DNA from: Octopus sinensis
Lineage: Eukaryota
Direction of reading: 5' to 3'
NCBI RefSeq assembly: GCF_006345805.1
Contig: NW_021834688.1
Span: 1 to 43,295, forward strand
Length of the DNA: 43,295 nucleotides
A program made the position numbers and the translations under genes. Below are positions 1,808 to 37,188 of the stretch, piece after piece. Within the stretch, counting starts at the first letter, position 1; the number at the start of each line of letters is the position of its first letter. The notes under the pieces are model-generated. The model made no database searches and had not been told where the DNA came from. It saw only the letters and a list, made by a program, of their open reading frames with translations.

Positions 1808-3780
1808 CAGTTTTTGTGATTATCTCTGCAACTTTATATGAATAAGATAATCCAGAGACATTTTGAAATATATTTTTATTAAAGATTGACGGTAAGGCGT
1901 TTTTATTTTCAAAATTCTTTTTTAATTCTAGAAAAAAGTCTGGCTTTTTTGCAATTGAATTATGATGTTTTCGCTTTAAATGTTCAATCAAACGAGACGG
2001 TTTCATTGCCTCATTCGAAAAAATTGTACCACATTGAAGACAAAGTGGTTTATTAGGATCTTGAGGATCTTTAATAAATCCAAGAGAAATATATTCATCT
2101 TTATACATTCTGACTTTTTTTTGAACACGACCCATAAAGATAACTAGAAATCACGCTTAGAAATTTAAATAAAATATAATAAAAATATCATATTATTAAT
2201 AAATATTATTAGACTCGATTATATATCTTTATTTTTTCAAAGATTATCGACTTCTAACATAAGATTTTAATTTTTCAAATTTTAGCAATCAGCCATCGCC
2301 CCCCTACCAAAAAAAATCGCCCCTAGGGGGCGAATCGCCCGCCGTTGAGAACCACTGATCTAAAGGATCATTCTTCTTTTCCCGGATGAGACGACTTTCA
2401 TCAGGTTCCGATTCATAGTTCCATTGCTCTTCCTCTCGATTAATGTTATTATAGGAGTAGGACTCTTTTTCAAATGCTCCCGTCATTAAGTCGGTTTCGT
2501 CGAGTTTCTGATTTATATTGATATCAAGGAAAGTTATATTTTCTTCAAAACCGTCGTCCTCTTAGGACATCATTCCATGTTTATAATCGATGCACATACT
2601 TTCAAGAGTCTTCTTCATGATGATAGCTTGGATGTATGCTCTTACAGGGTACTCAATTTTCAGACCACTCTGGTATTGTTTGTAGTATTTACTGACAATG
2701 GCATCCCACGTTAATACTATGGGTACTATATTCACTTTTGCTTTGTGGATTAAAGCCAATTCACTTGCTAAGAGATCATACTTGTGGGATTTTTCGACTT
2801 CGACTTTTTTAAGAATTTGCTGCGAAGTTATTCCAATTTCGATTAGTGTAATCGTATTTTTAATTTTATCCCACACGAAAATGTCGGGCTTGTTGTTATG
2901 AACGTGTGTGGCAGTACTTATAGTAGTATCGACTCTGATCTCAACTGCTTCATTTGCAACTATAGACTGGACTGAATGGGTCTTCAATCTTTTTGACCTT
3001 TTTATTCCATACTGTCTACAGAGATGTAAGTGAATACATCTCACTACTTCATTATGCCGTCGTAAGCAATCGGTGTTTAGCATTCGCCCACACCTGGTAG
3101 CTAAATGGTCAACAGTTTTTTTCGCAGAGTTGCAATGTTTGCAATTCGTTTTTCCTGCTCCAAAGAGGAAATTGCGGTCTTGTAGTAAACAGAAGGATGC
3201 TTCTGATCTCGGAGAGATGTTTCCATATGTTAAACACGCGGAGGACTCCGTGACATCGACACTAGTATCTTCCAAACAATTAAAGAGGATTGAATGCAGA
3301 GGTTTTTTCCTGATTTCTGCAATTAGGTATTTATTCTGTAATCCTTGCAGTGCCTTCACATTGAGACTTCCATGGTCTCCAATTTTGTATTTTCGAGTGA
3401 TAAATTCTACGATTGTGGCCATATGTGTTTTCTTTGACTTCATGACCCGCAAAATTCCCGCTCTTTTCAAACAGTAATGAGACTTCTTTTCAAGGTCTCC
3501 GAAAAATTGGAGGAGCATTCTTTCGCTTTTTTGAGTTATAGATACGAGTCCTCTTTCAAGACGATTCTGGGTAGGTATAATCTTTCTTTGTTCGCCGGCT
3601 TCAGGTGAATCTTATTCTGTATTAGAATTCCTCTGATTTTTTTATCAATAACCTCAAATTCGGTTGGGTCGATATCAATAAGTCCAATATAATACAGTGA
3701 ATCCTCGCAAATTGGCCATTTTTGGTACATAGAGTTTTATGGCCAATTTGAGAAAATGGCCAATTTGAAAAAATCAATAT

Positions 3781-5335
3781 TTAAAAAATAAAATAAACAC
3801 GTTTAAATTTATTAAAATAAAATTCAATCCCTAATTCCTTTTTATTTGCTCTTTTTACATTTTCTTTGTATTTTCTTATTGCAGTAATCAGCGAAACATC
3901 ATTCTCATTTTCTGCATTACAGTAAAGTTGCCTTTCTATTTTAGTTAATGTCTTTGCAATATCTTTTCTATCGAGTGGATATATGATTTTTGTCTCTTCG
4001 TCGCTAATTTCAGACTCTTGATCCTCTTGTAAACAATTTTCGTTTATATCTTGATCTTCTGTGTTTTCGATATTTAGAAAATCTTCGCTCATTAGAGGAT
4101 CGAAAATGTCAGTTCTTTCAATTTCAGTCTCATAATGTTGAATTAATGTATTTTCGTGATTAGATTCATTTAAAATCTTAAAACAATTTTGAATAGTTTC
4201 AGTAGATACGTCATCCCAAGCCATATTAACAAACAAAATTGCATCTTTTAATGTCAATTTTTTGTATGAATTGTATACAGAAATATTTTCAGTCTCCAGC
4301 AAATCAGTTAAGTACTGTAGCTTTCTTCTCATGAAATGAGTCTTGAAGGTTTTTATAATTCCAATATCCATTGGTTGTAGTAATCCAGTAGAATTTTTAG
4401 GAAAAAATAAAATCTTAATACAATCCAAGTTTTGAGGAATAGAATGTGCAGGACAGTGGTCTATTAGCAATAAAATTTTTTTCTTTTTAATTTTAAGCTG
4501 GAGATCAAAGCTAATAATCCAATCAATAAAAATAGATCCAGTCATCCAAGCTTTCTGTGAGCTATAATATGAGACAAGACATCCATAGTCAAAATTTTTA
4601 AAACATCTAGGCATTTTTGGTTTTCCAATCATCACAGGTTTCAATTTATGACTTCCGGTCATGTTTGAACAAAGCATAATAGACACACGGTCTTTAAAAT
4701 TTTTGTATCCTTGGAATCGGTTTCTGCATACGCTTTTCGATGGAATAAGCTTGTAGTATAATGCAGTTTCATCCAAATTATAAATTAGATCAGGCTTATA
4801 CGATTTAGAAATTTCTTTAAATTCTTCACGAAAAGAATTAATGTCAACTACTTTATCTGTTCGCATCTCTCCATGTAATTTTAGCATTCTAAAACCGTGT
4901 CTCTTTTTGAATTTTGCCAGAAATCCATTAGAATTTTTAAAGTTACTAAGTTGTAGCTCTTCGGCAAAATGCGCAGCCTTACACGATATTAAGGAATCAT
5001 TCAAAAAACCACCTAAAAATTGGTTTTCAATTAATACCTTTAGACTCTATTGTATCCATCCATTCGATCAATTTTTCTTCAAGCGTAGGAAATTTTGGTT
5101 TGTGAGCAGCTTTATACGAATTTTGATAGATTTTCGAATCCCGTAAAATAGAGTCTTTATTAAGCAGTAGATTATTGATCGTCTTTCTCGAGATCGTCTT
5201 GTGGAATAAATGTGAGAATCTGTCAGCCAGAAGCTGACACGAAACACTGTCATTTTCTTCCTTGTAGTTTATAATTTGTGTTTTTTCAAGAAAAGTGAGC
5301 CGAGTATAACGTCCACGAGAAATTTTATAAGACAT
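3781..5335 (-). CDS. pogo/Tigger transposase, two exons (5335-5038, 5012-3781), 509 aa after splicing, DD30D
   Basis: N-terminal HTH and CENP-B-like HTH (FKNSNGFLAKFKKRH). Triad NLDET / LLIDHCPAH / LQPMD with 30 residues between D2 and D3. No stops or frameshifts once the 25-nt intron is removed. Confidence 0.92.
5013..5037 (-). other. 25-nt GT-AG intron in pogo transposase
   Basis: GTATTAATTGAAAACCAATTTTTAG. Removal gives WMDTIESKG|GFLNDSLISCKA. The same intron is at 13531-13555 and 36704-36728. Confidence 0.93.
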
Positions 5336-6312
5336 GTGATTAAAAAAATAGTTTATTTTCTAATTAAAAAAAATAATAATTCAAAAATTGTGGCCAATTT
5401 GCGAGGATTCACTGTAATTATAAAGAGACAATGCATGTTCATTGATGGATTTGAATAGATTCCCTGAGTTAAGTTTTGTAGTGGCCAGATTGTTAATTCT
5501 TTTCTTCATCTCATCAAAGATTGATTTTAGCACATCGCTTTTCAGTATGTTACTCATTTTATCTTCGAGCACTCCCAGGTATCGGTAGCTATCAAGTCCA
5601 TCAAGTAGTTTTGCCTCGGAAGCTAAGCACTGCACGTTAGTAGCTGACTTTTCCACATTTTTCTCTAGTCCAGGAGCCTCGAAAAAAAGATTAACATCAT
5701 TCATTATTTTTATCAACGTATCTTCTTTCTTCGAGAATATTTTTAAGTCATTCATGAAAAGTAGATGGTTTGTTGAGTATGTAAGTGATCCCTGGCCAGA
5801 GTTGTCCATATTCAGTTTTGGGTACTTCACATTTAATAATCTGCTTAACGGATCCATCAATAGCACAAAGATCTGAGGGGATAACGAGTCTCCTTGTAAG
5901 AATCCCTTTCGTAATTTAAGTTCTCCAATTTCTTTTTTGTCAAATATCAATTTAATTTTCCATCTTTTCACCAAATTTTTGATGAAATCTTTAATCCAAT
6001 TTGGAAGGCCAGAAGAGTCAAGAATCTTAAAAAGAAAGTCGTGGTCCACTGTGTCGAAAGCTTTTCTAACATCGATCCATGCAGAGGCCAAATTATTTCC
6101 GTTTTGTTGATTATTTGTTCTTAAATTCTTTCCCATTATCCGTCTGTAGAATAAATGGGGGACCAATAATGAAATCGGTCAATATAAAAAACATCTATTT
6201 GAATATTTTTGATTACTTCAAGTTCATGTTTGGTTAGGTTGAGTAAAACCATTTTTGAAATTTAGATTTGATCAATTATACTTATTTTTTTTAAAATCAC
6301 TTTTTTATTAAA

Positions 6313-6435
6313 TTGGGGGACCTGGCAAGCAGAAGGAGAAATGATCATCGGGAACGGACATGGCTTTTCCAACGAATATCAATAGCCATCTTGCGTGGGA
6401 ATTGCCATTTCATCTTATCCTCTGCTGCTAATTAA
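6313..6435 (+). mobile_element. CRE-like retrotransposon extreme 3' fragment
   Basis: LGDLASRRRNDHRERTWLFQRISIAILRGNCHFIL*, similar to the C-terminus of the CRE-like ORF at ~15880-15990. Confidence 0.75.
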
Positions 6436-6528
6436 ATTCGTGTTCAGTTTTTAAACAAAAATTTGTCTTTTTTAAAATCGGAAAACTTAGATAACCAAAA
6501 CAAAATATGTTGCGAACTATGCGCGCGA

Positions 6529-7120
6529 TCAATGTGACGTATGTTGAAAGGCAAAGATTTGAGGTGACAAGGAATCACCCTGGAGTATGCCTCTTTCCAA
6601 TTTTACCTCTCCGATTTCATTATGATTCAGAATTAGCTTAATTCTCCACTTCGTTACAAGGTTTTTCACAAAATTCACAATCCAGCAAGGGAGTCCGGAG
6701 TTTTCAAGCACCTGAATCAGAAAATCATGATATACCGAATCGAACGCTTTCTTTACATCAATCCAGGTAGAAAACAAATTATTTCCGTTTTGCTTGTAAA
6801 TGCACCGGTTAAGAATTGCTTGTTCCTTTGCCCCTTGACACATCTGCCGAGTTCCCAATTGATTATCGGCAATCAGATTATATGCCTCAATATAATCTCT
6901 CAACTTCCTGTTAACACATTTCGTTCCAAGTTTATATAAGTTAGACATACAAGTAATTGGTCTAAAATATTTGGGTCCTTGACAAATATCTTTTTTTGAG
7001 ATGAGATATGTGATTCCAGTGTAGAACCACTCATACGGTGTGTATTCACCATGAATTATCTTGACTAGTTCTTCACACAAGTGATCATGGATTGAGGTAA
7101 TTTTTTTTAAAAAGAAATTA
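6529..7120 (-). mobile_element. Second R4/Dong-like RT fragment
   Basis: FRPITCMSNLYKL, QGAKEQ, WIDVKKAFDSV, RGILQGDSLSP; truncated at both ends. Confidence 0.8.
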
Positions 7121-7122
7121 TA

Positions 7123-8040
7123 CACCCGCTAGCTCTCCAGTTTTGGAGTTGTTTAATTATTTTAAGGATGCTTTCTTTACTAAACTCTGCAAATGTATCC
7201 TCTGCCATGTCACTCTCTTGTTAATCTGTAACACACTATCACTTCTCTCATTTTTACTCCATATTTTTTTCCAATATGATAGATATTCACTGTCATTAAA
7301 CGTCAGAATTTCAATTTACTTATGACATGTAAAACCGGACAAAAATAAAAACAAATCATTTAGTAGTTAATATGTCCACCATTTGCACTGAAAATTTTGT
7401 AACATCTATTTTTCAAAGACATTACTAGTTTTTTCAATAATTCTGGTGATATATTATTCCATATTTCTGTTAATTCCTCCTTTAGTTCATTTTTGTTCTT
7501 GACTACATTTTTTGATAATTTTCTCTTCATTTCTGCCCATAGATGCTCTATAAGGTTTAGATCCGGTGATTGAGCCGGCCATTGAAGTAAAATAATGTTT
7601 TTTTTCTTTAATGTAATCTTGTACCATTTTAGATTTATGGCAAGGTGCATTATCCTCTTGTAAAATAAATGAGTCTATCCCGAATTTTTTCGCCACATTC
7701 GAATATATTATTGGATAAAATATTAATATATTTTGCGCTATTCAGGATTCCATCAATAAAAACAAGATTATCGATTTCGTTATACGAGAAACTGTCCCAG
7801 ACCATTACTTTCCACCACCGAATTTTACAGTTGGGATAATATTGCATTTTTTGTATGCAGAACCATTTTCTCTGTACACTATTTGATGCTTATTGGTATT
7901 AAAAATATCAAAAGAGCATTCATCAGTAAAAATTACCGACTTCCATGTCTCGTCGGAAATGCTTAAAAATGATTTCGTAATTTCACGTCTTGAAATTATA
8001 TTTTTGCGGATAAAAGCGATCCCGCGTATGCAAAACACAA
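7123..8040 (-). mobile_element. Degenerate Tc1-like transposon, 3' half
   Basis: VIFTDE, TVKFGGG, VMVW, LQEDNAPCH, WPAQSPDLNLIEHLW across frameshifted ORFs. A TA-CACCCG junction at 7121-7128 may be the terminus. Confidence 0.8.
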
Positions 8041-8200
8041 ATTCCTATCTTGCAAAAGACAGTATAATGCTTCGCACCCTGGACCATTGTTTCCTTTCGA
8101 TAGCCATTGCGAAGAAGTAGATAGGTCGACATTTGATTCCTCCATACATTTAAACATCATTGAGTGTGGTGAATTACAGCAGATTCGGTTAAGCAAGAAC
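8030..8200 (-). mobile_element. Third R4/Dong-like fragment
   Basis: PHSMMFKCMEESNVD...EALYCLLQDRN parallels LHSILFNCLEDTSVD...EASFCLLQDRN of the first R4 copy. Confidence 0.7.
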
Positions 8201-8379
8201 TTTCTTTGAGCGTCCTTGAGTGAGTAAATGTTCAGATTTTCTCCGCCGACAGCTGCGCGTTTAAATGCAAGAAATTCTGCGATTGATTCTTGTTTTTATT
8301 ACTTGATAGTTGACTGTTTTTTCAAACTTTTAAAAAACTGGGAGAGTATTTTTTGCTGCATTAACATTATTTTGGGGAT

Positions 8380-8540
8380 TGTTGTGATTAGATAAATACG
8401 TCATTATCCCAATCAATAGAATGGAAAAACAGCCTTTGCATGGATCAAGTTGAGGAGAATATGGTGCATCAAATTTTCGCATACTCGTATGCCTTCAAAA
8501 TATCCTTATTTTTATGGATTGGAACATTATCCATATTATA
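8380..8540 (-). mobile_element. IS630/Tc1-like DDE transposase relic
   Basis: MDNVPIHKNK ... APYSPQLDPCKGCFS read manually across a frameshift. Confidence 0.55.
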
Positions 8541-9189
8541 TAAATAAATGATTCTGCGAATTTGAGGTTTTAAATTTGATGTTTGTTATATTTGAACACA
8601 TTCTTAAAGTCCTGTCAGCAACTGTTTACGCAGACAGTAGGTATATTATTGAAACAATTGATTATGTCTTTTTTGTTTTCAACTTCTTGGAAGAATTCGT
8701 CAGCTGCTTTAATAATACACGTCTTTATATGCTTCCCGTCACTAAAAGGTTCCCACCTTTTTACGATTTTTTAACTGATAATAAAACTGGCAATAGTAGA
8801 AATTTTTGATAACTGTTTTAAATTTTTAGACGTTGACGTTAAATATCCATCATTTCTTGTAAGCTCCAGAAGGATAATTTTGCGAAAAGCACTATTTTTG
8901 GAATTAAAATGTCTTCCCAAATTGAATTTTTTGTTGTGTTTTAAAGTCTCTTGACATCTGAGACACGTAGGTAAGTTTTTAGATTGTAAAGCCCAGTATC
9001 AAAAAACAATTCAGGTGTTCGAGAAAAGATATTTAATGGAACTATACCATTTTCAGTTCAATTCTGACATTTTTATAACTATTTTGTCTTTGCGATTTCC
9101 AATATTGACAATGGGATATTCTATTTTGACATTTTTAATATTAATTTTAACAATGCTCTATTTAATAGAAAAGCAGCTATATCCATTGT

Positions 9190-9420
9190 AAAAATGGAAA
9201 TGCGTATGTTTGTAAACGTGGAGGTAGAAAGGATGCTACGATTAATCTTACTGATGATGATATTAATTTAATTTCTACAATTAAAAATTAAGAACAATCC
9301 ATCGATAACATTGAAGGAAACACAAACATTGGTAAATAATACAGTTTGTATTGTGACAGCACATAACCGACTTGGAGGCAAATTTATTACCTACAAAATG
9401 CTGCGAAGAGAACCAATTTC
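9190..9420 (+). mobile_element. Possible IS630/Tc1-like HTH relic
   Basis: KRGGRKD...NPSITLKE...YKMLRREP with stops; weak. Confidence 0.3.
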
Positions 9421-9879
9421 CAAAAATTATTTTATTTTATTAAAACACCAAGACCACGGTAAAAACCGAACAAACAACAAGTGATCCCAATGCACTCAAC
9501 CAGGGATCTTATCCTTGCTCGGTGATCTTTCCACGAGCTCATACAAGATCGCACCGGGCGGCTGGTCGCCTTTGTCGGGGCATTTGCAAACAAACTGAGC
9601 TTCAGCTTGATCAGATCTTCCAGAGGAGCTGGTCTGGAACGTTTGTTATCGTGTGAACAACGTTTGGTTAATCTGTGGGCCTTTTGTTGGACCTCTTCGA
9701 TTCACCTCCTGTTGGACCACGATAACGGCGGACCCCATGATTCGCAGAGATAGGAAATGGACGGTTCAAAGTACTGAAGGTAAATATTCGTCAATACCGG
9801 GGGGAACCGCTTTTCCATAAACCGGATAGGCTTCTGAGCACATTCATTTTTTTCTTCGCTCAAAAACCGGTGACAATTT

Positions 9880-10420
9880 ATTTTTTTTACTTATTAAGAA
9901 CTTCTACCCTTGCCATAGTAATTATAAAAAGGCATGTGCAACACAGGAAACAATGTTATTGGTCATTCTCTGCCTTCTACCACGGTCATGAGCAATTGAT
10001 CTTAGTGCGTCCAGATCCTCACCAGACTTTAAACACTTCCTCACTTTTTGGAGGTCATTGTGCAATGCGACCGGTAGCGACATCCTTGGTCGACCACAAA
10101 AGCATTTTTCTTCGAACATGAAATAATCCTCCATCGCCACGTCGGCTGGGGAAGCGAGATCCATACGCAGAATATGGCAAAACAATCTTTATCTGGCGTC
10201 AGCGATATCCCGGCTTAGAGGCCTACTTCTGCATTTGTTGTAAATTCCAGAATTCGAAATTCTGGCAGGCTAGTTCACACCAAATAACAGTCTAAGCTAT
10301 TTTCTGTGAAACGCATCAAGAGCCGTTGATTCGTCACTCGTACAGCCCCAAGTGCCGGCATTGTATAACAGCATCGACTTCACAAATACATTGTACATAC
10401 GCATCCGTTTTTTTACTTCT
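9880..10420 (-). mobile_element. RTE-like LINE C-terminal relic
   Basis: RMYNVFVKSMLLYNAGTWG...LDAFHRK*LR...RISNSGIY...RLFCHILRMD...GRPR with several stops. Confidence 0.75.
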
Positions 10421-10699
10421 TTTTTAATAAAAAATACATACTGGAAAAATGAAAACAAGTGCATTTTTACTAATTGAATAATATATTTAATGCTTGGTAG
10501 GTTTATTTGGGTTAAGATGAGAGTTTATCTTTCAGAGATTGAAATTAGATAATCCTTTTGGCCATATCTCTTTCAAATCCTCTTTTAACAGGCTGATAAT
10601 TGCATACTACAGGAAGGGAAGCTCATACTATCAGGAAAGTCATTTTGACTGCAAAATGAATTCCGTTGTTAATTAAAAAGAGTGTATATTCAAAATGCT

Positions 10700-11950
10700 T
10701 CAGTTCACAACAATAAACTAACTTTTTGATTTTACCCTGACCCACGACGTGGGTAGTAATTGGATGGAAATAAGATTCTAGAAAATCACATAAGTGTACT
10801 TATACAATAGCATGCAAATGTTCCGGAATGAGCGTCGTATTTTACTCCCAAAATATTTGGCGATTTTTGAAACGGTATCTTTACATCGTTTAAACACAGT
10901 TTCACTTACGCTTTGCTGAAGTACGCAGCGCAGTAATCGACTTGAGGTACTCAATTTGGAAAATAGTTCAAGTCTGACCTTGTATTTTTGGTATATACAT
11001 TCTTCCTGATGGTGAATACCAAACTCTGGTAAATGTAGCATTCCAACAATTATTAAAAACTAAATCTAAATCAGAAAAATCTTTTCTAGTTGGTTCATAA
11101 TGATTCAGTTCTTTCGAAGTAAAGACAGAAAAGCCCAGACTACTGGCTAAGTCTTAAAGGATAGCTCCACCCATATTAGTTGTTTCACATCTATAACTCA
11201 CATTTTCGCGTTAAGATCTCAGGCCAGGATTGTCAAGGAATTTTTTTCAAAGAACGTCACAATGACATTTGAATAACGCCTTAGAGACTTTGATTACATT
11301 CCACCTATGATCAGCCAGCCAGAAGTCGTGTGCAACTCAAGCACAATGAGGATTTGTCAGGTTTTAAAGGTTTTAGTGTCTGATCAGTTTTAATATACAT
11401 ATTGAATAGAGAATCGAAGTGCGAAGCTAGAATACTAGCTTTTTCGACGTCCTCGGTAACAGTACGATCGAGATTATCGTGGACAATGATAGTTAATACT
11501 CTACTTCTTTGCGTACGGAGTTCTTTGATTTTCTCAGGTAAAGTTGTGTTTTCCGTTTGTACTCTGAGTTCTTTTTCTATTAGAGAAAGTCGTCCAATTT
11601 CCGGACTACTCTGTTTGTGTCTCGATCCGTGTATCGGCATTAACTGGTCAGAAAAAATCAATAATTCCATTCTATAATATATCTGCAACAGTAGACCCGT
11701 CACTATGGACATTACAGAAGCTCGTTAGCGCCTATTTGGGACAAACTAAGACTCGATAAAGATACTCATGCTTTTGGGTAATAAATCATATCACAACGAT
11801 AGAAAATCGGCGTTCCGAGGACGTCCACAAACAAAAATACCTACTGTTATTTCAAAAGACATTCAACGCATTAAGATACAAAAATAGAGACGACCTTGAT
11901 ACTCTCTGGAGTATACCACGGAACCGCGCATATTGAAAAAATATGATCAA
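10700..11950 (-). mobile_element. L2/CR1-like LINE relic
   Basis: TEDVEKASILASHFDSLF linker motif and RRSFRN...LLYK RT C-terminal motif; heavily decayed. Confidence 0.5.
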
Positions 11951-12123
11951 TATGTTTCTATGTTAGTGCAAATAATATTTCTCCTGGACCGCCGTAAGAA
12001 CAATTTCTAATCTGATGAAATATTTCATTAAAAAAATTGTACCTGATTTTAAAACCCTTATGCTTCTTTGAATCCAAGGATGACTATAGGAAAAATTATT
12101 ACCAAGTCATTCAAAGTCTATCG

Positions 12124-12440
12124 AGTCAGGAACAAGAAGAACGTGTCCGTGAATTGTTAAGTCTAGTTGGCATTATTTCTGAAAGCATATCTAATCTTCC
12201 TTATGAGTTTAGTGGTGGTCAACACCAAAAAATTGGCATTGTACGATCTTTAGCTTTAAATCGCAGTTATATAGTATGTGATTAACCTATTGCATCTTTT
12301 GATGTCTCTATTTATGCACAAATCATCAATCTTCTAAAAAAACTCCAAGAAGATATTAGACTCACATATCGTTTAATTCCACATGACTAAATACTTATCG
12401 TCGGGTGTAACTGTCATGTATTTAGGAAAAATCATAAAAG
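12124..12440 (+). pseudogene. oppF: Bacterial OppF/DppF-like oligopeptide ABC ATPase fragment
   Basis: [10 protein letters not shown]...[21 protein letters not shown]...IVCD*PIASFDVSIYAQIINLLKKLQED...TY..IPHD...VMYLGKI. This gives the ABC signature, Walker B (E to stop) and H-loop in Opp/Dpp-type context. Confidence 0.85.
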
Positions 12441-12669
12441 TGAAAATAAAATTCTCCAGGGGACAAAATCTCTTATTACCTATTAAATATTTTATGTCGC
12501 GATCCAGAGCTGTGAGACGCCAAGAAAATATTAATAAATTTTAATAAAAATTACATTTCTGAACTTTTTTTGTTGATCTCTTCAGTAAATATCTGAAATT
12601 ACTAATTTTTTCTTTCACCCAAAACAACATAACATAAAATCATATGTTGAACGTAGTATTTTAATGGAT

Positions 12670-13888
12670 TTTCGTGACTAGATTTATTTAAAATCTTAAA
12701 ACAATATTGAATGGTTTCAGTAGATATGTCACCCCAACCCATATTAACAAACAAAATTGCATCTTTTAATGTCAATTTTTTGTATTAATTGTATACATAA
12801 ATATTTTCAGTCTCCAGCAAATCAGTTAAGAACTGTAGCTTTCTTCTCATGAAATGAGTCTTGAAGGTTTTTATAATTCCAATATCCATTGGTTGTAGTA
12901 ATCCAGTAGAATTTTTGGGAAAAAATAAAATCTTAATACAATCCAAGTTTTTAAGAATAGAATGTGCAGGACAGTGGTCTATTAGCAATAAAATTACCTT
13001 CTTTTCAATTTTAAGCTGGAGATCAAAGCTAATAATCCAATCAACAAAAATAGATCCAGTCATCCAAGCTTTCTGCAAGCTATAATATGAGACAAGACAT
13101 CCATAGTCAAAATTTCTAAAACATCTAGGCATTTTCGGTTTTCCGATCATCACAGGTTTCAATTTATGACTTACGGTCATGTTTGAACAAAGCATAATAG
13201 ACAGGCGGTCTTCAAAATTTTTGTATCCTTAAAATCAGTTTCTGCATACGCTTTTCGATGAAATAAGCTTGTAATATAATGCAGTTTTATCCAAATTATA
13301 AATTAGATCAGGCTTATACGATTTAGAAATTTCTTTGAATTCTTCACGAAAGGAATTAATGTCAACTTCTCTATCAGTTCGCATCTCTCCATGTAATTTT
13401 AGCATTCTAAAACCGTGTCTCTTTTTGAATTTTGCCAAAAATCCATTAGAATTTTTAAAGTTACTAAGTTGTAACTCTTTGGCAAAATGCGCAGCCTTAC
13501 ACGATATTAAGGAATCATTCAAAAAACCACCTAGAAATTAGTTTTCAATTAATACCTTTAGACTCTATTGTATCCATTCATTCGATCAATTTTTCGTCAA
13601 GCGTAGGAAATTTTGGTTTGTAAGCAGCTTTAAACGAATTTTGATAGATTTTCGGATCCCGTAAAATAAAGTCTTTATTAAGCAGTAGATTATTGATCGT
13701 CTTTCTCGAGATCGTCTGCGGAATAAATGTGAGAATCTGTAAGCCATAAGCTGACACAAAACACTGTCGTTTTCTTCCCTGTAGTTTATAATTTCTGTTT
13801 TTTCAAGAAAAGTGAACCGAGTATAACGTCCACGAGAAATTTTATAAGACATGTGATTTAAAATTGGCCAATTTGCAAGGGTTCACTG
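12670..13888 (-). mobile_element. Second, decayed copy of the same pogo family, 3'-truncated
   Basis: TIR 13865-13888 (2 mismatches vs copy 1) followed by TA. ORF pieces are nearly identical to 3781-5335 but with stops and a frameshift. The 25-nt intron is retained at 13531-13555. Confidence 0.93.
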
Positions 13889-13949
13889 TATATTTTTAAT
13901 AATTAATAAAAGTGCAGGATTTTATTTTGAATTATAAAGTTGTGGTGGT

Positions 13950-14015
13950 ATATTGGACTCATTGATATTGATCCCGGAGAGTTCGAGTAGATCGATAAGA
14001 ATATCCGACTCGTGC
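13950..14015 (+). mobile_element. Short R4/Dong-like relic abutting the CRE element
   Basis: YIGLIDIDPGEFE*IDKNIR matches YIGLIDIDPTEFEVIDKKIR of the first R4 copy. Confidence 0.7.
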
Positions 14016-16095
14016 TGGCCATCACCAAACTAATGAACAGGATGCTATCAGGGACACTGCCTGAAACAATTCGACATGTAATGTTCTCTGCCAAGCTAAT
14101 CGCATTCGACAAGAAGGGAGGGGGAGTACGCCCTATTGCTGTTGGACTGGTCTTTCGTCGTTTGGCCTCAAAGCTTGTTTGCAGAGCAATCCTGCCTACG
14201 TTGATAACACAATTACAACCAGCCCAAATTGGGGTCGGTTCACCGGGGGGTTGTGAAGCGGCAGTTCATGCTGTCCGAACATTCACTGAAAAGAACGAGG
14301 ACACTCCTTTTGTAATCGTCAAAATCGACATTAAAAACGCCTTCAACTCGATACGACGTGACACAATTCTGGAGGATTGCCTCACACATTACCCATCAGT
14401 GTACAGCTATATTAATAGTATTCATAGCTCTTATCGAAAACCATCGAGTTTGGTGCACGGCCAATATCACATCCCATTGTGTTCTGGAGTCCAACAAGGA
14501 GACCCATTGGGCCCTGCCTTGTTTAGCCTGGGAATTGCCCGTGTCACCAAATATTGTTCGACTCCTCTGAGGGTATGGTATTTGGATGATTGCACAATGG
14601 GCGGCCAGCCGAAGGATGTGCTAGATTGCCTAAAAAGTCTGATAGCCCAATTGGAATCCCTATGCGTAACCCTGAACACAATTAAGTGCGAAGTAACCAA
14701 TTTTGGATTTTCGCAGCCTAAATGGGACCTGATTCTTGAAACATTCAGAGAGATCATCCCTAAAGCCACAGAAACCAAACCAGAACAACTAGAAATACTT
14801 GGATGCCCTCTCACTGATGCAGGAATCAGTAACACTTTAATAACAAAAGAACATCAACTAAAAACAACTTTCAGACCTTTGGAGTTGCTAGACGCACATA
14901 CCTCCCTATTCCTGCTAAAAAACGCCTTGTCAGCACAGAAACTAAATTACGTTCTTCGGGGTGCACCCTGCTACCTGGAAACGCAACAGCTCGACAATAT
15001 CGATTGTCTCTTTCGGACCACAATTGAACGCATTACGAATGTGAAATTCGACGACCAAGGGTGGGACCAAGCGACCCTACCCGTTAACCTGGGCGGACTG
15101 GGAATCCCTTCTCCGAATGATCTGGCTCGCCCCGCATATCTATCCTCTTTGGACTTCAGCCAACTGCTGATCAGGATGATTCTCCAACTCCAAACTGAAT
15201 CATCTGAAATCACAGAGATGGAGCATTCGAGAGGGATGATGCCTGAGCAGAAAAATCGTTACAAGACCATCTGCGAGGATAAATACGAGAGGCTTCTGAA
15301 CCAGTCAAACCAACACAGACGTGCCTGTCTAGTGACTGGAAGATGCGAATCAAGTGGTGCTTGGATCAATGCACTCCCCGTTGATAGTGTCGGAACTCAC
15401 CTTGACGACGATACTGTCCGCATTGGCATCAGCACCAGACTTGCACTGGAGATTTGCCGGACTCACAAATGCCGGTGTGGGGCCACCGTCGATTGTTATG
15501 GACACCATGCTCTCTCTTATCGAAGAAGTGCAGGACGATTTCCAAGACACAAGCGATCAACGAAATTGTCAAGCGAGCCCTGGAGTCTGCAGGATACCCA
15601 GCCGTATTTGAACCGGTCGGGCTTGATCGAGGAGATGGAAAACGTCCTGATGGGATCACAATTTTCCCATTTGAAGAGGGGAAACCTCTAGTCTGGGACG
15701 CAACCTGTGTGGACACCCTCTGCCCGTCCAACATTGCCGGGAGCGCAGTGGACAGACTGTATGCCGCGGAAAAAACGATGAGGGCGAAGGAGAGAAAATA
15801 TGAAGCGCTACGAGATCAATTCGTGTTCTGTCCGATTGTGGTCGAGACAACTGGAGGAATAAGTGGGAAATCGCTTCGCTTCCTAAAGAAGCTTGGACGC
15901 TTAGCCACATTAAAAAGTTACGACACACGTGAGACCCGGTGGCTTCTCCAGTTGATCTCCGTTGCTATCGTGAGAGGCAACAATCAATATCAATACAGCC
16001 GTTCCGCGAGATCGCAACTTAATGTGAAATCTCGCACTGGCCAGCCACATAAGATCAAGATAGAAAAAGAGAACATGTTATTAGGAACTAACTAA
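14016..16095 (+). mobile_element. CRE-clade non-LTR retrotransposon (RT + Zn knuckle + RLE), 5'-truncated, one frameshift
   Basis: GGVRPIAVG, GGCEAAVH, DIKNAFNS, GVQQGDPLGPALF, WYLDD, GGLGI, CRCG...GHHAL, DGKRPDG...WD, VETTG, ISVAIVRGN. A 1-nt deletion at ~15550 separates ORFs 14012-15691 and 15454-16095. Confidence 0.85.
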
Positions 16096-16519
16096 TCCAA
16101 ACGAACGAATCCAAACGAACTGTCCCCCGCATCTATTTTTCTCTCGTGCTGTGGCTGATGTAGACATCCGGTTCCTCAGTGAAATCACTGATGACGGCGT
16201 CACTCGTCAATCCAGAGTGCATGTAATATGCATGGAACCTTCGGCCGGAATGATAGCAGTGAGATTCGAACCCAGAGCTTCGCGAAACTGCCAAATTCTT
16301 CAAGCACTGAGAGGCAACGCAACGTCAATTATTTTGGCAAGGTCCACTTCGGACAGATGGCTTTATTAGCTAATTAGTTTCTTTTTTAGCTGTTTTTGTT
16401 AATATATATCCGACGAATTCTTAAGAACAGTTTTGAAGATAACATTTGGAGTTTGTAATTGACAAATGATTAGTAAAAGACAGTTAGAAAAAAAGAAAGT
16501 TTGTTTAAAACTACGCAGT

Positions 16520-16723
16520 TTAGGACGCCCTCCCAGCCTCACGGATTGCGAAACAGTTGCCGCGGATTACGGCAATGAGAGGCGTTGAAGAAGCCAAAAA
16601 GACTCTCTCGAGTCGTCCGTTTTTTTGGCGATTCTTCTCCCCAAACCACGTAGGAAACAAAGCGACTTGGGGGCAAAGACCCCAGAGGTCTCAACGGCGA
16701 TGGGCGTGAAAACAAAACGGTTG
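16520..16723 (-). mobile_element. CRE-like 3' fragment
   Basis: FVFTPIAVETSGVFAPKSLCFLRGLGRRIAKKTDDSRESFWLLQRL(S)IAVIRGNCFAI...*; one frameshift. Confidence 0.8.
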
Positions 16724-16820
16724 ACAGTTTACATTTTAAGTTTGCGGTTGACATTTTAAGTTTGTAATTGTAAATTTGAAGTTCATAATAGACAAATTGA
16801 CTTGAAAATGGTATAGTAGC

Positions 16821-17235
16821 TCGATTGAGTGGGACTTTTGTATATTGGATGAAATTCATATGGAATAGATTTCCCATGTTTTGAATCTTTTAAAGTCTAA
16901 GAATATGCCTATATTCACTGGGACACCAGTTCTGAAAAATTTGGGAGATATTTGAGCCTGGTTTGACTTTCTTATGCCTGGGTTCCTTGGTACTGAGGGA
17001 GCCTTTAACCGACATTTTGTCAAGACTGTCAGAAATCAGACTGACCCCATGTTGCTCCAGCCATCAGAGGGACTGATTGACTTACAGAGTTTGCACAAGT
17101 TGGTCCTACTCTTCATTCTGTGGAGGATGAAAGAGGATGTCTTAAATGACTTCCTTCCAAGACAATCCAGGACTACCAATGCCATATGAGTCCACTTCAA
17201 ACAGTTCTCTACAACTCCCTCTCACTAAAAGTAGG
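16821..17235 (+). pseudogene. BTAF1: BTAF1/Mot1-like SNF2 ATPase fragment
   Basis: WDFCILDEIH...FTGTPV...I*AWFDFLMPGFLGTE...LHKLVLLFILWRMKEDVLND...KTIQDYQCHMSPLQ. It has two stops and a frameshift and matches recalled Mot1/BTAF1 motifs (DEGH, GTPIQN, FDFLMPGFLGTE, LRRMKEDVL, IIQDYYC). Confidence 0.85.
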
Positions 17236-17531
17236 GCCGTAATGTTTGTTTATATTACGCCTCAACTTTCCGCAATTAAAAGGGAAGATAGTCAAGATCA
17301 GTATCCCAGGTAAATTAAATACATGTGTGGACTTGATCATACGTTGACACAAACTGTTCAAGCCCAACTCCTAAACCAGTCTCTAAAACAACCACCGGAA
17401 AAATAGGGTTCAACAGTTCCGGAACTGCAACTCGACCGATTTAACACAAAGACATATCCATTTTTAAAAACTAAAATGGGCCATCGAAAGTGTACTCTAA
17501 TCTAACACTAAGAAATTTTATTTACTCAAAT

Positions 17532-18730
17532 TCACAAATTACTGAATTTAGTCTCCGTCACCACTTTTATAATTTTCCTTACGTCAGAAATATCCTCTAT
17601 AACGTATGAAGGAACAAGTCTTCTGGCCAATCCAAGGACGGTCCTCACTCTTTTAAACCTCTCGAAATAATTAGTCTCATTCAATGGCCACTCTTTGATT
17701 GTACTCATAAGTAAGAGGTAGCATTTTTCTTCGGAATACTCCTCTATCTCCTGAATTAGCGCATCATGGTAGTACTCCTCTGCAACCTCCACCAATTCTC
17801 TTCGATCGTAATCATTCAAGTATTTCCTAGAGAATCAAAAACCCTAAATAACTTGGAATTCTTAGGCGTGGGGGAGAGTCTGGAATAAATGCCAAACAAT
17901 TCTTCTGCACTCCCCAACTCGAAAAGAACGTCTAATAGCAGTCTAACTCCCCTAGAACAATAGAACTAACCATTACTTGCGTAGATATATGTGGAACTTG
18001 CCTCGTTCCACATTATCAGAGTCAATCATCCACACATTCTATCATTAAGGTCTAGTCATTACTGCAAATAAATTTTCCTTCGTGTTCAAAGGCGGGAGAA
18101 TAGGCTTGTGGTCTAAAATATATAAGAAAGAAATAACATTTGATAAGGAATATCACAACAACCCGATGCACGTATTTTCTGTATGAGGAATGAAATGAAA
18201 GGAGAACTAATATCATACAGACAACAATGTGTGGCATAATCAGAACAATCTACTTATGTGAGCAGAATTTGGTCACCACGCAAGTCTTCCATTACGTAAG
18301 ATATCATGAGAATATACTCAATTATTACTTTGTTCTTTGGATCCAGAAATAGGCACTAAATATTTACTCATTTCAAACTGTAATAAATGATTTTTTGGCC
18401 TGGTTGAGTTGACCAAGTGTTGTGGCCGTCATTCCCAGCTTAAGTTGAGTATAGAAACACTTCGGATCGATGTCAGAGGCCTAATAGATGCTCAAATATG
18501 TATACTTTTTTTAAATATTTAAAAGCAGGTTGAAAGTTTTTAAGGTGGAAATAGTAATTGCCAATAAAATTAAGAGTGTAGTATTCTACACTACCAATAG
18601 ACAAAGAACGTTTCCCAGACAAGAGTTGATTTAGGACAGCACGTTGGTTTCTAAGGAGTTGGCTAAGTTCATGCTCCTTTTCTGAAATGGACAGGGCCAT
18701 TTGAATTAGCTGCATTTCTGGAATCGACAT
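17532..18730 (-). pseudogene. CABIN1: Internally deleted CABIN1 paralog: N-terminal TPR exons fused at 18087/18088 to the last exons
   Basis: ATG at 18730. Introns 18481-18505, 18356-18378, 18250-18276 and 18113-18137 (23-27 nt) give a TPR region that aligns without gaps to the recalled CABIN1 N-terminus. 17532-18087 is identical to 40705-41260. Confidence 0.75.
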
Positions 18731-23149: not shown

Positions 23150-26124
23150 AGAAAAAAATGGAAAGGAAAAATTTTATTTTAAAATAAAAGGCTGTTAGTG
23201 AGGGTATAATTAAGACCTTCGGCATTTCTGCCTTTTCAGTCCCGCACACACGCTCGCCTCTCAGCCGCAAACTAAGACTTACCGTCTTACCTGCCACCCA
23301 GACATTATCTTTTCTAAGACCTCAGGGAGGCCTTTGAGGGACAATTCCTGGGTGTCCGTGAGCTCCACTCGCCATCCTAAGCCATGGGCTAGCCGGATGG
23401 CTCGTCTTCTGACTTTCTTGAGCGCGTCAACGTACTTCTCTCGGTCCTCACAGAAGTGCCAGGCATGTACGCCATAGGTCAACACGGGTAACACCATGGC
23501 GTTAAACACACGTAGCCAAGCACCTCTCCGCAGCCGGAAAGCACGCAACGCGCCTAATCGCTGCATTGCACGCATTTTCGTACGTGCAATGTGATCATCA
23601 AACTTACCGGACGGCTTAAAGAGCACGCCCAAATAAGTCATCCGATCAACTGCGGCAATTGCTGACCCGTTCAGCAATAACCTAGGAGCGTAATTAGTGT
23701 AACCCCTCGTCCTTTTACAGACTTTGAGAACACTGCACTTATCCGCACGCATCTTTAGACCCCTACTCCCACACCAGTTTACAAGTCCATCCACAGCAAC
23801 CTGTAGCCTACGACACGCACACTCAGGTTTCATCGAGTGATCCCAGAGGATGATGTCGTCTGCATAAATTACCATTTCAGTACGAGCATTGACTGGCATG
23901 GGCGCAGATGCCATAAAGACATTAAAAAGCGTGGGACTCAGCACAGAGCCCTGAGGGACCCCGCGAAGGACTGTTCTGACTTTAGAAAAGACCCCCTGAT
24001 GCCGCACGACCTGTCCGCGAGATTCAAGGAACCCCGACAGCCAGCGCCTTAGACACGGAAAAACCCCACACGTGGCGAGGGAGCTCCGGAGGCCGTCGTG
24101 CCACACCGAGTCGAAGGCCTTTTCGATGTCAAGACTAACTAGCATACCGCATTCCTTCTTCTGGAGGGCGCACTTCATCTCAGAAGACACCTTCCATAAG
24201 CAGTCTCCACACGAACGACCCTCCCTGAAGCCCCATTGGAACTCAGGGAGGGCATCAACCACCGTCAGCTCCTCCAGGAGCCTTCGGTGCATGATCCTTT
24301 CTAAAATTTTAGATACAGCGGGAAGCAAGGAAATAGGTCTGTATCCCCCGGGGACATCATGAGGCATCCTGGGTTTTCCGATAAGGATTACCTCAGCCAC
24401 TTTCTATCTAGAGGGAATCATCCCAAGTCGCAAGCTCCCGCTAAACAAGACCTGTAAGGCGGTGATCAACAACGGCGGGGCCTTCTTGAAGAGGGCCATA
24501 GGGATCCGATCCAGACCCGCCGCGGTGTTCTTACTTCGGGAGATCGCTGCCAGAATCTCCGCTTCGGAAATATCGCCTGCATCGTTCCTTGATATGCCCA
24601 GCTGGCAGCGCTTGTCCCACGACAATATCTGCTGGACAGTATCAAAGGACGATGTCTCCACGAACTGGCTTCCGTCAGTTCCAGAGATGTTATCGAGGTG
24701 GGTCGAAAATATTTCAGCCACCTCAACCGGGTCCGAAACGAGGGTTCCATCAGAGCGTTTAAGGCGCACTGAATTTGCTACCCCTCTCCCCGACAGGCTC
24801 TTCAACTGTTTCCAGAAGTCCGGGAAGCGGGCGTCTACGCGTCTGCAGGCTCGCTCCCACCGTGAACTTTCAAGTTCGCGGATTTCTCTTTTGATCTCCC
24901 TCTGAAGCCGGCTAATCCAGCCACGAAACCAAACACGGTTTTCCTCGTAAACGCATTTGTCCCGTAGTCTGGATAGCCGGCGCTTAAACTTAATTTTATT
25001 TAAGACCCGGTATGGCAGCGTGGAATGTGACTTACCCTGCACTGAGTTCTGTTTGAAATTATCTCGCATATAATCAGTCAGGGCAGCATTGATTCCATTA
25101 TCTAACGCCTCCAACTCACGTATATTGGCACAGGTATTCCCCACCAGAAGTGAGGGCAACCTGCTGGCCATGAACCTCTCCAGGTTGGCCCAAGAACCCG
25201 ACCGGAGGTCGAAGTATCCCGGAACCCTTTGAGAAACTGGCTCGCGGAGTTCGTGCAATAGAGGCAGATGGTCGCTTCCAATATCGGGCAATAAAATTGT
25301 TTTACTAACCCAATTTAGCATTCCAGGACTGACCAGAGCAAGCCCTAGCCAGTCCAGTCCGCCTCGCGAATCGATGTGGTTTGGCTCACTTGAAGTCCGG
25401 ATTTCCAGCCCGAGGTCTTCAACCAGCGTCTTCAGAGCCAAACCATGCGCGTTGGTTACCCTGAAACCAAGCTCTATGTGCTTGGCATTCAGGTCTCCAA
25501 CAACCATCGCCTTCGGATGCTTTCCAAAGAACTCCCGTACGTGCCAGGAACACGCCGTAAAGTTCTTCGAATACATCGCCCCTAGGAAAAATGTAAGGTT
25601 ACCTATACGAATCCTTACTTGAAAGAATTCGCATAGGCTACAAGAACATAAACCTGAACTTTGCAATGCGAGGTACGGCTTGTAGAAGAGGCTAGTTCCC
25701 GTGCCACATATTGATCCCTGTTTCCAGGGTATGTGACAACAGTTGTAGCCATCAACTACGTACGGACCCCCCTTTACCTTCGTTTCGTTAACCACCAGAA
25801 TGTCCGCACTCGTGGTGGTTAACATCCTCTGAACGGCGTCTCCTTTACCGGACAAGGAGCGCGCGTTCACCGATATAATGTTGAGCATCATATCGGTTCC
25901 TCACCAAGGATCTTCTTGGCCTCAGCCATGTTGCAATGTAGCATATCTGCTACACTGCACTTCGTCGCCCTACATAATTTTAGTAGGCGCACACACAACT
26001 CCACCGCAGGACTAACACTGTCCTGGGGAGCACGCTCGCCAGGGGGGGAGTGCGGTGGCATTTCCACGTATGGAGGACGCCTTTTCCCCCCTAGGTTTTG
26101 CTGGGCGGTATCACCTGTAGCCCT
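23150..26124 (-). mobile_element. Jockey/I-group LINE: ORF1 tail + ORF2 (APE endonuclease + RT), 5' end lost at the satellite
   Basis: APE motifs NARS, NETK, VGDLNAKH, GSDHLPL. RT motifs YRPISLL, LDIEKAFDSVWH, GVPQGSVLSP, IYADD. A single TGG-to-TAG nonsense lies at 24404-24406. The ORF1 stop overlaps the ORF2 ATG (ATGA, 25888-25891). Confidence 0.9.
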
Positions 26125-28004
26125 GTATCTACACATTTAGGCACCTCATAAAATTGCATAATATATTACGCAATTTATTACCTAATCTCAAGTACCCTTG
26201 TTTCCTCATATCTAGGAACCTCTCCAAATTGCATAATATATTACGTAATTTATTACATAATCTCAAGTATCCTCGTATCTACACATTTAGGCACCTCTTA
26301 AAATTGCATAATTTATTACGCAATTTATTACCTAATCTCAAGTACCCTTGTTTCCTCATATCTAGGAACCTCTCCAAATTGCATAATATATTAAGTAATT
26401 TATTACATAATCTCAAGTATCCTCGTATCTACACATTTAGGCACCTCTTAAAATTGCATAATATATTACGCAATTTATTACCTAATCTCAAGTACCCTTT
26501 TTTCCTCAAATCTAGGAACCTCTCCAAATTGCATAATATATTACGCAATTTATTACCTAATCTCAAGTACCCTTGTTTCTTCATATCTAGAAACCTCACC
26601 AAATTGCATAATATATTACGCAATTTATTACATAATCTCAAGTATCCTCGTATCTACACATTTAGGCACCTCTTAAAATTGCATAATATATTACGCAATT
26701 TATTACCTAATCTCAAGTACCCTTTTTTCCTCATATCTAGAAACCTCACCAAATTGCATAATATATTACGTAATTTATTACATAATCTCAAGTATCCTCG
26801 TATCTACACATTTAGGCACCTCTTAAAATTGCATAATATATTACGCAATTTATAACCTAATCTCAAGTACCCTTGTTTCCTCATATCTAGGAACCTCTCC
26901 AAATTGCATAATATATAACGTAATTTATTACTTAATCTCAAGTATCCTCGTATCTACACATTTAGGCTCCTCTTAAAATTGCATAATATATTACGCAATT
27001 TATTACCTAATCTCAAGTACCCTTGTTTCTTCATATCTAGAAACCTCACCAAATTGCATAATATATTACGTAATTATTACATAATCTCAAGTATCCTCGT
27101 ATCTACATATTTAGGAACCTCCCCAAATTGCATAATATATTACGCAATTTATTACCTAATCTCAAGTACCCTTGTTTCCTCATATCTAGGAACCTCTTTA
27201 AATTGCATAATATATTAAGTAATTTATTACATAATCTCAAGTATCCTCGTATCTACACATTTAGGCACCTCTTAAAATTGCATAATATATTACGCAATTT
27301 ATTACCTAATCTCAAGTACCCTTTTTCCTCAAATCTAGGAACCTCTCCAAATTGCATAATATATACGCAATTTATTACCTAATCTCAAGTACCCTTGTTT
27401 CTTCATATCTAGAAACCTCACCAAATTGCATAATATATTACGCAATTTATTACATAATCTCAAGTATCCTCGTATCTACACATTTAGGCACCTCTTAAAA
27501 TTGCATAATATATTACGCAATTTATTACCTAATCTCAAGTACCCTTTTTTCCTCATATCTAGAAACCTCACCAAATTGCATAATATATTACGTAATTTAT
27601 TACATAATCTCAAGTATCCTCGTATCTACACATTTAGGCACCTCTTAAAATTGCATAATATATTACGCAATTTATAACCTAATCTCAAGTACCCTTGTTT
27701 CCTCATATCTAGGAACCTCTCCAAATTGCATAATATATAACGTAATTTATTACTTAATCTCAAGTATCCTCGTATCTACACATTTAGGCTCTTCTTAAAA
27801 TTGCATAATATATTACGCAATTTATTACCTAATCTCAAGTACCCTTGTTTCCTCATTTCTAGAAACTTCTCCAAATTGCATAATATATTACGTAATTATT
27901 ACATAATCTCAAGTATCCTCGTATCTACATATTTAGAAACCTCCCCAAATTGCATAATATATTACGCAATTATTACCTAATCTAAGTACCCTTGTTTCCT
28001 CATA
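26125..28004. repeat. Tandem satellite, ~25 monomers of 75 bp, two main variants, 11-monomer higher-order repeat
   Basis: AAATTGCATAAT recurs at 26151, 26226, 26301... Diagnostic variants recur ~822-824 bp apart (26376/27200, 26826/27648, 27051/27873). Confidence 0.97.
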
Positions 28005-29300
28005 ACAGTTTTTTTCGCAGAGTTGCAATGTTTGCAATTCGTTTTTCCTGCTCCAAAGAGGAAATTGCGGTCTTGTAGTAAACAGAAGGATGCTTCTGAT
28101 CTCGGAGAGATGTTTCCATATGTTAAACACGCGGAGGACTCCGTGACATCGACACTAGTATCTTCCAAACAATTAAAGAGGATTGAATGCAGAGGTTTTT
28201 TCCTGATTTCTGCAATTAGGTATTTATTCTGTAATCCTTGCAGTGCCTTCACATTGAGACTTCCATGGTCTCCAATTTTGTATTTTCGAGTGATAAATTC
28301 TACGATTGTGGCCATATGTGTTTTCTTTGACTTCATGACCCGCAAAATTCCCGCTCTTTTCAAACAGTAATGAGACTTCTTTTCAAGGTCTCCGAAAAAT
28401 TGGAGGAGCATTCTTTCGCTTTTTTGAGTTATAGATACGAGTCCTCTTTCAAGACGATTCCTGGGTAGGTATAATCTTTCTTTGTTCGCCGGCTTCAGGT
28501 GAATCTTATTCTGTATTAGAATTCCTCTGATTTTTTTATCAATAACCTCAAATTCGGTTGGGTCGATATCAATAAGTCCAATATAATAATTATAAAGAGA
28601 CAATGCATGTTCATTGATGGATTTGAATAGATTCCCTGAGTTAAGTTTTGTAGTGGCCAGATTGTTAATTCTTTTCTTCATCTCATCAAAGATTGATTTT
28701 AGCACATCGCTTTTCAGTATGTTACTCATTTTATCTTCGAGCACTCCCAGGTATCGGTAGCTATCAAGTCCATCAAGTAGTTTTGCCTCGGAAGCTAAGC
28801 ACTGCACGTTAGTAGCTGACTTTTCCACATTTTTCTCTAGTCCAGGAGCCTCGAAAAAAAGATTAACATCATTCATTATTTTTATCAACGTATCTTCTTT
28901 CTTCGAGAATATTTTTAAGTCATTCATGAAAAGTAGATGGTTTGTTGAGTATGTAAGTGATCCCTGGCCAGAGTTGTCCATATTCAGTTTTGGGTACTTC
29001 ACATTTAATAATCTGCTTAACGGATCCATCAATAGCACAAAGATCTGAGGGGATAACGAGTCTCCTTGTAAGATTCCCTTTCGTAATTTAAGTTCTCCAA
29101 TTTCTTTTTTGTCAAATATCAATTTAATTTTCCATCTTTTCACCAAATTTTTGATGAAATCTTTAATCCAATTTGGAAGGCCAGAAGAGTCAAGAATCTT
29201 AAAAAGAAAGTCGTGGTCCACTGTGTCGAAAGCTTTTCTAACATCGATCCATGCAGAGGCCAAATTATTTCCGTTTTGTTGATTATTTGTTCTTAAATTC
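28005..29300 (-). mobile_element. R4/Dong-like element copy B, uninterrupted, 3' end replaced by satellite
   Basis: ORF 27977-29338 reads through both the pogo site and the LPRNRL frameshift of copy A. It ends at CKHCNSAKKTV, then satellite sequence. Confidence 0.88.
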
Positions 29301-37061: not shown

Positions 37062-37188
37062 TATATTTTTAATAATTAATAAAAGTGCAGGATTTTATTT
37101 TGAATTATAAAGTTGTGGTGGTATATTGGACTCATTGATATTGATCCCGGAGAGTTCGAGTAGATCGATAAGAATATCCGACTCGTGC

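Follow-up and report, generated by a model that had tools for sequence, protein, structure and literature searches.

A decayed fragment of an OppF/DppF-type ATPase gene of bacterial origin in transposon-rich DNA of Octopus sinensis

A sequence of about 390 bp in a transposon-rich contig of Octopus sinensis (VCDQ01010770.1 of GCA_006345805.1; the full 43,295 nucleotides analysed are referred to below as the window) appears to be the fossil of the middle part of a bacterial OppF/DppF-type gene. In the reading that we prefer, and to which we assign a probability of roughly 0.8, this fragment was integrated in the nuclear DNA of the octopus as filler in the repair of a break, decayed neutrally, and was recently duplicated.

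Results

Identity of the relic

The first copy of the relic was delimited by sequence and profile searches to positions 12047-12439 of the window on the + strand, where it forms four collinear stop-free pieces, here called A to D. These span approximately positions 103-242 of an OppF profile of ~323 positions and retain ~136 of ~330 residues, roughly the middle third to 40% of the gene. A first-pass annotation of this DNA had placed the relic at 12124-12440. The motifs that it quoted are all present on the + strand, each at its position, and the matches to OppF lie far beyond chance, but the relic begins ~75 bp further upstream, at 12047, and includes a segment at 12053-12091 that is read in another frame.

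The stop-free pieces were queried one by one, with no mended open reading frame built. The NCBIfam OppF models matched pieces A, B and C in order, covering positions 109-224 of E. coli OppF. Against the E. coli OppF model (NF011659), piece A (queried as 12053-12157) matched positions 109-137 (E = 9.1e-6), piece B (queried as 12019-12282) positions 134-189 (E = 9.2e-13), and piece C (12286-12387) positions 191-224 (E = 4.9e-7). The Mollicute OppF model (NF043078) matched piece B with E = 5.8e-13 and piece C with E = 1.7e-9. These two were the highest-scoring models over pieces A to C; OppF/DppF models outscored all others, and OppD models scored much lower. As the relic is only part of a gene, all of the NCBIfam scores fall far under the cutoffs set for whole proteins. 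Piece B nevertheless reached the gathering score of the Pfam ABC_tran family (PF00005), with 26.5 bits against a cutoff of 25.

A local OppF hidden Markov model gave E-values of 8e-19, 2e-9 and 2e-6 for relic pieces. When all stop-free pieces in the six frames of 10000-14000 were compared with this profile, only the four pieces matched, at profile positions 107-136, 126-186, 188-221 and 224-242.

The 63-residue core of piece B was searched with phmmer against 1.84 billion representative proteins and returned 5535 matches at E ≤ 1e-3, the best with E = 4.9e-23. The ten top representatives were scanned with NCBIfam, and all ten were OppF/DppF proteins, either single ATPases or the F half of fused OppD-OppF proteins. 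In a search of PDB chains, all 60 of the matches listed were prokaryotic ABC ATPases and none of these was eukaryotic; Mycobacterium OppD (Rv1281c) came first, followed by E. coli OppF, Mycobacterium DppD, MetN and DppF, and the E. coli OppF structure 8z21_D matched piece B with E = 5.3e-10. Eukaryotic ABC proteins as best matches would have refuted the first-pass annotation, and this outcome did not occur. The relatives that carried a name or an organism label, whether representative proteins or matches in plasmids and metagenomes, were all bacterial.

A local alignment of 281 Opp-type domains has seven columns that separate F-type from D-type subunits, and at every one of them the relic shows the F-type residue (160 F, 164 Q, 169 G, 172 R, 183 C, 187 I and 193 S). 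It shares with E. coli OppF (PDB 8z21 chain D; NF011659) and DppF (PDB 8z1v; NF043071) the order and spacing of motifs from the post-Q-loop region to VMYxG, namely the helical subdomain, FSGGQ, the Walker B motif IVCD(E), the D-loop, DVSxQAQ, the H-loop and VMYxG, and its spacing is the canonical short one of OppF/DppF. Unlike these proteins, it lacks Walker A, the N-terminus and the C-terminal oligopeptide-ATPase domain, its frame is broken four times, and its catalytic Glu codon is a stop. Judged by sequence, the relic belongs to the ATPase family of prokaryotic peptide/nickel (Opp/Dpp) importers, is of the F-subunit type, and is not of a eukaryotic ABC subfamily, as the first-pass annotation had proposed. 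OppF/DppF is the second ATPase subunit of the peptide/nickel (PepT-family) ABC importers.

Lesions in the relic

The 5' end of the relic is a Phe codon followed by a stop (TTT TAA, 12047-12052, +). The TAA at 12050-12052 would stand at the Q-loop Gln of the family motif IFQ(D/N)P, a placement that follows from its position relative to the aligned NPYASLNP. Piece A (12053-12112, +, in the frame of 12053) carries the post-Q-loop motif typical of Opp/Dpp ATPases; it scored 21.7 bits with the local model and matched NF011659. Within it, a 13-residue motif (12053-12091, +) lies in a frame other than that of piece B. A -1 frameshift separates the two pieces and maps to a zone at 12100-12125 (+), since each of them covers profile positions 126-136, but in a frame of its own.

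Piece B (12100-12282, +, in the frame of 12019) comprises the helical subdomain, the ABC signature and Walker B. The signature FSGGQ is read directly at 12208-12222 (+) and opens a 17-residue stretch that is also read directly (12208-12258, +); the R-Q-R that normally comes next reads H-Q-K. Walker B is YIVCD (12268-12282, +); the catalytic Glu codon that should come next has become TAA (12283-12285), after which P is read. The Walker B Asp occupies profile column 184, where 270 of 271 sequences have D, and the stop of the relic falls in the column after it.

Piece C, PIASFDVSIYAQIINLLKKLQEDIRLTYRLIPHD (12286-12387, +), contains a degenerate D-loop, in which SALD reads ASFD, the DVSxQAQ motif and the His-Asp of the H-loop; it scored 31.2 bits with the local model and matched both NF043078 and NF011659. 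The DVSxQAQ region, DVSIYAQIINLLKKLQ, is read directly at 12301-12348 (+), and the H-loop PHD lies at 12379-12387 (+), in a column where 257 of 258 sequences have His. Immediately after this His-Asp, at 12388 (+), a deletion of ~11 nt has removed about four codons and shifted the frame, and profile positions 222-223 have no counterpart in the relic. Piece D, KYLSSGVTVMYLGKIIK (12389-12439, +, in the frame of 12377), is the strand after the H-loop. With it the alignment picks up again at profile position 224, in a different frame and overlapping the end of piece C; it includes VMYLGKI, read directly at 12413-12433 (+). Piece D is weak by itself (5.2 bits, E = 0.19) and collinear with the others at profile positions 224-242.

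The reading frame of the relic is thus broken by stops at 12050, 12283 and 12388, by the frameshift and by the deletion, and both of its ends are cut. One nonsense codon and one deletion had been reported for it in the first-pass annotation; both exist, but the count was too low, as there are two TAA codons, at the Q-loop Gln and the Walker B Glu, and a -1 frameshift in addition to the ~11-nt deletion. The relic covers 22 near-invariant columns (≥90% conserved), of which six have been replaced (R167K, A171V, A173S, P178R, E185stop and L190F). No piece in any frame of 10000-14000 aligned below position 105 of the local OppF profile, where the Walker A motif and the N-terminus would lie, and the same profile gave no signal 3' of 12439 within this interval for the C-terminal oligopeptide/dipeptide ATPase domain (PF08352), which full-length relatives do carry. 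With such lesions the relic is non-functional: it encodes nothing and is not a gene.

Genomic context

Around the relic, Pfam identified a pogo transposase (DDE_1), LINE reverse transcriptases (RVT_1), AP-endonuclease domains and a Tc1 helix-turn-helix. The proteins closest to the pogo transposase were annotated Octopus sinensis proteins with 90-98% identity. The relic is linked to these octopus transposons within one PacBio-based assembled contig, in two copies.

On the left, ~320 bp (11725-12046) separate the relic from an open reading frame at 11311-11724 (-), and they carry no OppF N-terminal, Walker A or Pfam signal. On the right, 200 bp with a GC content of 0.27 (12440-12639) carry no OppF C-terminal signal and lead to a truncated pogo/Tigger element (12640-13888, -). 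This element, recognised by Pfam DDE_1 and 95% identical to the intact copy described below, keeps its right-hand terminal inverted repeat (TIR) and lacks ~430 bp at its left (3') end, the side that faces the relic. Neither flank showed a terminal repeat or any likeness to sequence elsewhere within the window. The first-pass annotation had described the relic as flanked by a LINE relic and a pogo element. Its pogo was borne out, but its LINE at 11311-11724 matched neither Pfam nor the other LINEs of the window. Its remark that the relic has no mini-introns has no bearing here, since the host is an octopus.

When 184 open reading frames from 13 bacterial opp loci were compared with the whole window, they matched the relic pieces alone, and no other opp-operon or bacterial open reading frame was matched within it. 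Exact-protein look-ups of three neighbouring open reading frames, made for further copies of the locus, found none on record. In 5.8 billion protein clusters queried with piece B, within a length window that shuts out full-length OppF, no short predicted protein resembling the relic was found.

Other mobile sequences were noted in the window. LINEs with long open frames (559, 373 and 495 residues, with RVT_1 and AP-endonuclease domains) lie at 14012-16095 and 23279-25891, with a copy at 37185-39268; their GC content is 45-54% against a background of 30-37%. These features suggest young and possibly active retrotransposons. A decayed remnant of a Tc1/mariner transposase (7360-8038, -), recognised by eye only, consists of frame-shifted pieces that include NAPCHKSK and WPAQSPDLNLIEHLW.

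The duplicated block

A second copy of the relic lies at 35220-35612 (+), at an offset of +23173, and is base-for-base identical to the first. Both copies are part of a duplicated block of 12.7 kb (5415-18087 and 28587-41260) that is 99.976% identical, with three differences, all at 5902-6406. A tandem array of a 75-bp repeat (26151-28004; 24.8 copies, 83% matches, GC skew -0.38 to -0.51) abuts the left end of the second block.

An intact pogo/Tigger element of 1,720 bp (3695-5414) lies beside copy 1 and is cleanly absent from copy 2 (28587/28588). Its 24-bp TIRs (CAGTGAATCCTCGCAAATTGGCCA) are perfect, a TA target-site duplication is present, and its transposase open reading frame of 407 residues is intact; in the copy without it, a reverse transcriptase open reading frame of 453 residues (27977-29338) is unbroken. 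Because this clean insertion with its TA duplication occurs in one copy only, the two copies are distinct molecules. Such a difference suggests that pogo has been active very recently, and may still be, or else that the assembly has placed two haplotypes in tandem. To judge from the divergence between the blocks, the duplication or haplotype split is very recent and the relic predates it. The near identity of the copies means that they are not independent evidence of the age of the relic.

Two further observations concern the pogo transposase (3781-5004, -). Its closest named relatives outside Octopus, at ~50% identity, are those of the microsporidia Dictyocoela muelleri and Cucumispora dikerogammari; other animals are a more usual source of the closest named relatives for such a transposase, and this kinship may reflect horizontal transposon transfer. 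A stretch of the NCBI protein 'glycine--tRNA ligase, mitochondrial 1-like [Octopus sinensis]' is 98% identical to the transposase over 15% of the query. In the gene model of this ligase, one exon is probably a piece of pogo, and the model is likely to be a chimera produced by annotation.

Codon periodicity, donor and age

The relic retains a periodicity in base composition, with GC contents of 0.435, 0.336 and 0.229 at the first, second and third codon positions over 131 codons (heterogeneity, p = 0.0019). Its third-position GC is lower than the GC content of the window (p = 3e-4) and at or below that of the flanks. The donor would itself have had a low third-position GC, because drift toward host composition cannot take this value below equilibrium.

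At the DNA level, blastn against 7.3 Gb of plasmid-collection records returned four matches only, all to opp/dpp ATPase genes of low-GC bacteria, namely Mesomycoplasma hyorhinis (71.5% over 143 nt), Fusobacterium vincentii (75% over 96 nt) and two records of Cetobacterium somerae. The proteins encoded by these Mesomycoplasma and Fusobacteriota genes are 39-59% identical to the relic, and identities of 52-58% were obtained from Rhizobium, Paenibacillus, Deinococcus and an Acidobacteria-like metagenome-assembled genome (MAG). As the protein-level identities are no closer than those from other phyla, the blastn matches reflect a common AT-rich codon usage rather than kinship. The low-GC bacterial donor that had been proposed for the relic is supported by its base composition and by these matches.

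The first-pass annotation had further envisaged that translated searches would point to a donor group, and none was identified in the searches of representative proteins, plasmids and metagenomes. A tblastn search of plasmids returned 2404 records with identity above 60% in one only; the rest, from Rhizobium, Paenibacillus, Deinococcus and others, were below 60%. The best relatives overall were ~57% identical (52-58%) and scattered across unrelated phyla, and with no relative closer than ~57% a direct bacterial route and an indirect one are not distinguishable. The top representatives were mostly metagenome proteins with no name, and the two that bore an organism name were from a Pseudomonadota MAG and a Hyphomicrobiaceae MAG. 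Among 150 representatives, similarity to the relic did not correlate with a low-GC amino-acid composition. A metagenome scan with the exact 13-residue motif found 12 contigs, the best 55.6% identical and from an Acidobacteria-like lineage, and no donor emerged from it. An uninformative scan of genome contigs with piece B, using 8-mers that included mutated residues, found one distant NikE-like Paenibacillus locus (44% identity).

From the replaced conserved columns we estimated a divergence of ~0.14 substitutions per site (95% interval ~0.05-0.30), on the assumption that the donor had the consensus residues. At plausible invertebrate rates this would correspond to a decay time of millions to tens of millions of years, with a wide error.

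Mycoplasma accounts for >97% of the gut community of the common octopus (PMC9082898). This literature and the NCBIfam ranking, in which the Mollicute OppF model (NF043078 = MMSYN1_0168) has the top score for pieces B and C with no match from piece A, prompted us to consider a Mollicute donor. The opp ATPase of Mesomycoplasma hyorhinis, one of the four DNA-level matches, is 39-50% identical to the relic at the protein level. Its spacing between SLNP and VGL is ~128 residues, against ~35 in the relic and in Fusobacterium OppF. We down-weighted this candidate, as the relic lacks the long insert of the one Mollicute OppF compared. A broader proposal, that the relic came from a host-associated low-GC bacterium of the octopod gut, either one of the Fusobacteriota or a mollicute with a short OppF, and was captured in the germline, is in our view rather doubtful.

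Discussion

In the history that we favour, the repair of a chromosome break in the germline would have taken up a short stretch of low-GC bacterial DNA as filler, perhaps at the same break that cut the neighbouring pogo element. The fragment would then have drifted neutrally to its present divergence of ~0.14 substitutions per site, and very recently the 12.7-kb block that contains it would have been copied or split into haplotypes.

Nuclear copies of mitochondrial DNA (NUMTs) and Wolbachia fragments enter animal genomes by such capture. Wolbachia fragments in insect and nematode genomes were reportedly described by Dunning Hotopp et al. in 2007. Like the nuclear inserts of Wolbachia, the relic is a short, non-functional and decaying bacterial fragment in repeat-rich animal DNA; the Wolbachia inserts can be large and hold several genes, whereas the relic is a single piece of ~0.4 kb in a cephalopod host with no sign of an intracellular symbiont. 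With NUMTs and filler DNA at double-strand breaks it would share the proposed route, and the pogo element is cut exactly on the relic's side. NUMTs have an organellar source, whereas that of the relic would be bacterial, and its capture is the conjectural part of the comparison.

We weighed this history against an indirect origin, in which the relic would have arrived as cargo of a transposon, a virus or another eukaryote, or would be part of a host repeat with perhaps many copies in the octopus. Its position between transposon remnants is compatible with this origin, and the ~320 and 200 bp of unmatched flank could belong to an uncharacterised repeat. The microsporidian relatives of the pogo transposase would also imply that mobile DNA moves horizontally into this genome. 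The flanks, however, have no terminal repeat and are unlike anything else within the window, and no short relic-like predicted protein was found among the 5.8 billion clusters. The leftover bacterial-style codon periodicity suggests little time spent in a eukaryotic vehicle. We consider an indirect origin distinctly unlikely.

Contamination, or a chimeric assembly that joined a bacterial piece to octopus transposons, might be suspected in a small, unplaced contig of 43 kb, and its internal near-identical duplication of 12.7 kb could be an assembly artefact. A contaminant would be expected to have an intact gene with operon neighbours. The relic instead amounts to ~390 bp, interrupted by two to three in-frame stops and a frameshift, shortened by a deletion and changed at invariant residues, and no other opp-operon or bacterial open reading frame was matched within the window. 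Octopus transposons lie on both sides, and one copy alone has the clean pogo insertion with its TA duplication, as expected if the two derive from distinct molecules. Both the decay and the presence of two duplicates had been cited in the first-pass annotation against contamination. The decay does count, but the duplicates, at 99.976% identity and identical over the relic itself, add little on age. The actual arguments are the decay, the truncation, the host-like context and the lack of any other bacterial gene, and they make contamination or a chimera very improbable.

That the relic is a decayed exon from a eukaryotic gene for an ABC transporter has a negligible probability. It is true that ATPase domains of the ABC type are universal and that Pfam ABC_tran does not separate kingdoms, but the motifs NPxxSLNPR and IVCDEPxSALDVSxQAQ are those of Opp/Dpp importers, as is the ranking of the matches, with OppF/DppF models ahead of all others and no eukaryotic chain among the 60 PDB matches listed.

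The lesions, the truncation and the Octopus sinensis transposon context all agree with the original description of the relic as a decayed bacterial fragment in transposon DNA. Decayed bacterial fragments are well known in arthropod and nematode genomes, and the relic is a further instance of this well-known transfer from bacterium to animal. A full-text literature search found no report of a bacterial insert in a cephalopod.

For genome annotation, the relic is a test case for contamination filters, as a contig of this kind might be wrongly discarded, or an ABC gene wrongly annotated on it. It also provides a clean neutral sequence for estimates of the substitution rate in octopus. If it proves orthologous across Octopus species, it would date germline contact with a low-GC bacterium. 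Should the origin from a gut bacterium be true and several Octopus species prove to share the relic, this would be the first documented insertion of bacterial DNA in a cephalopod genome and the first dated molecular fossil of an association between a bacterium and a cephalopod.
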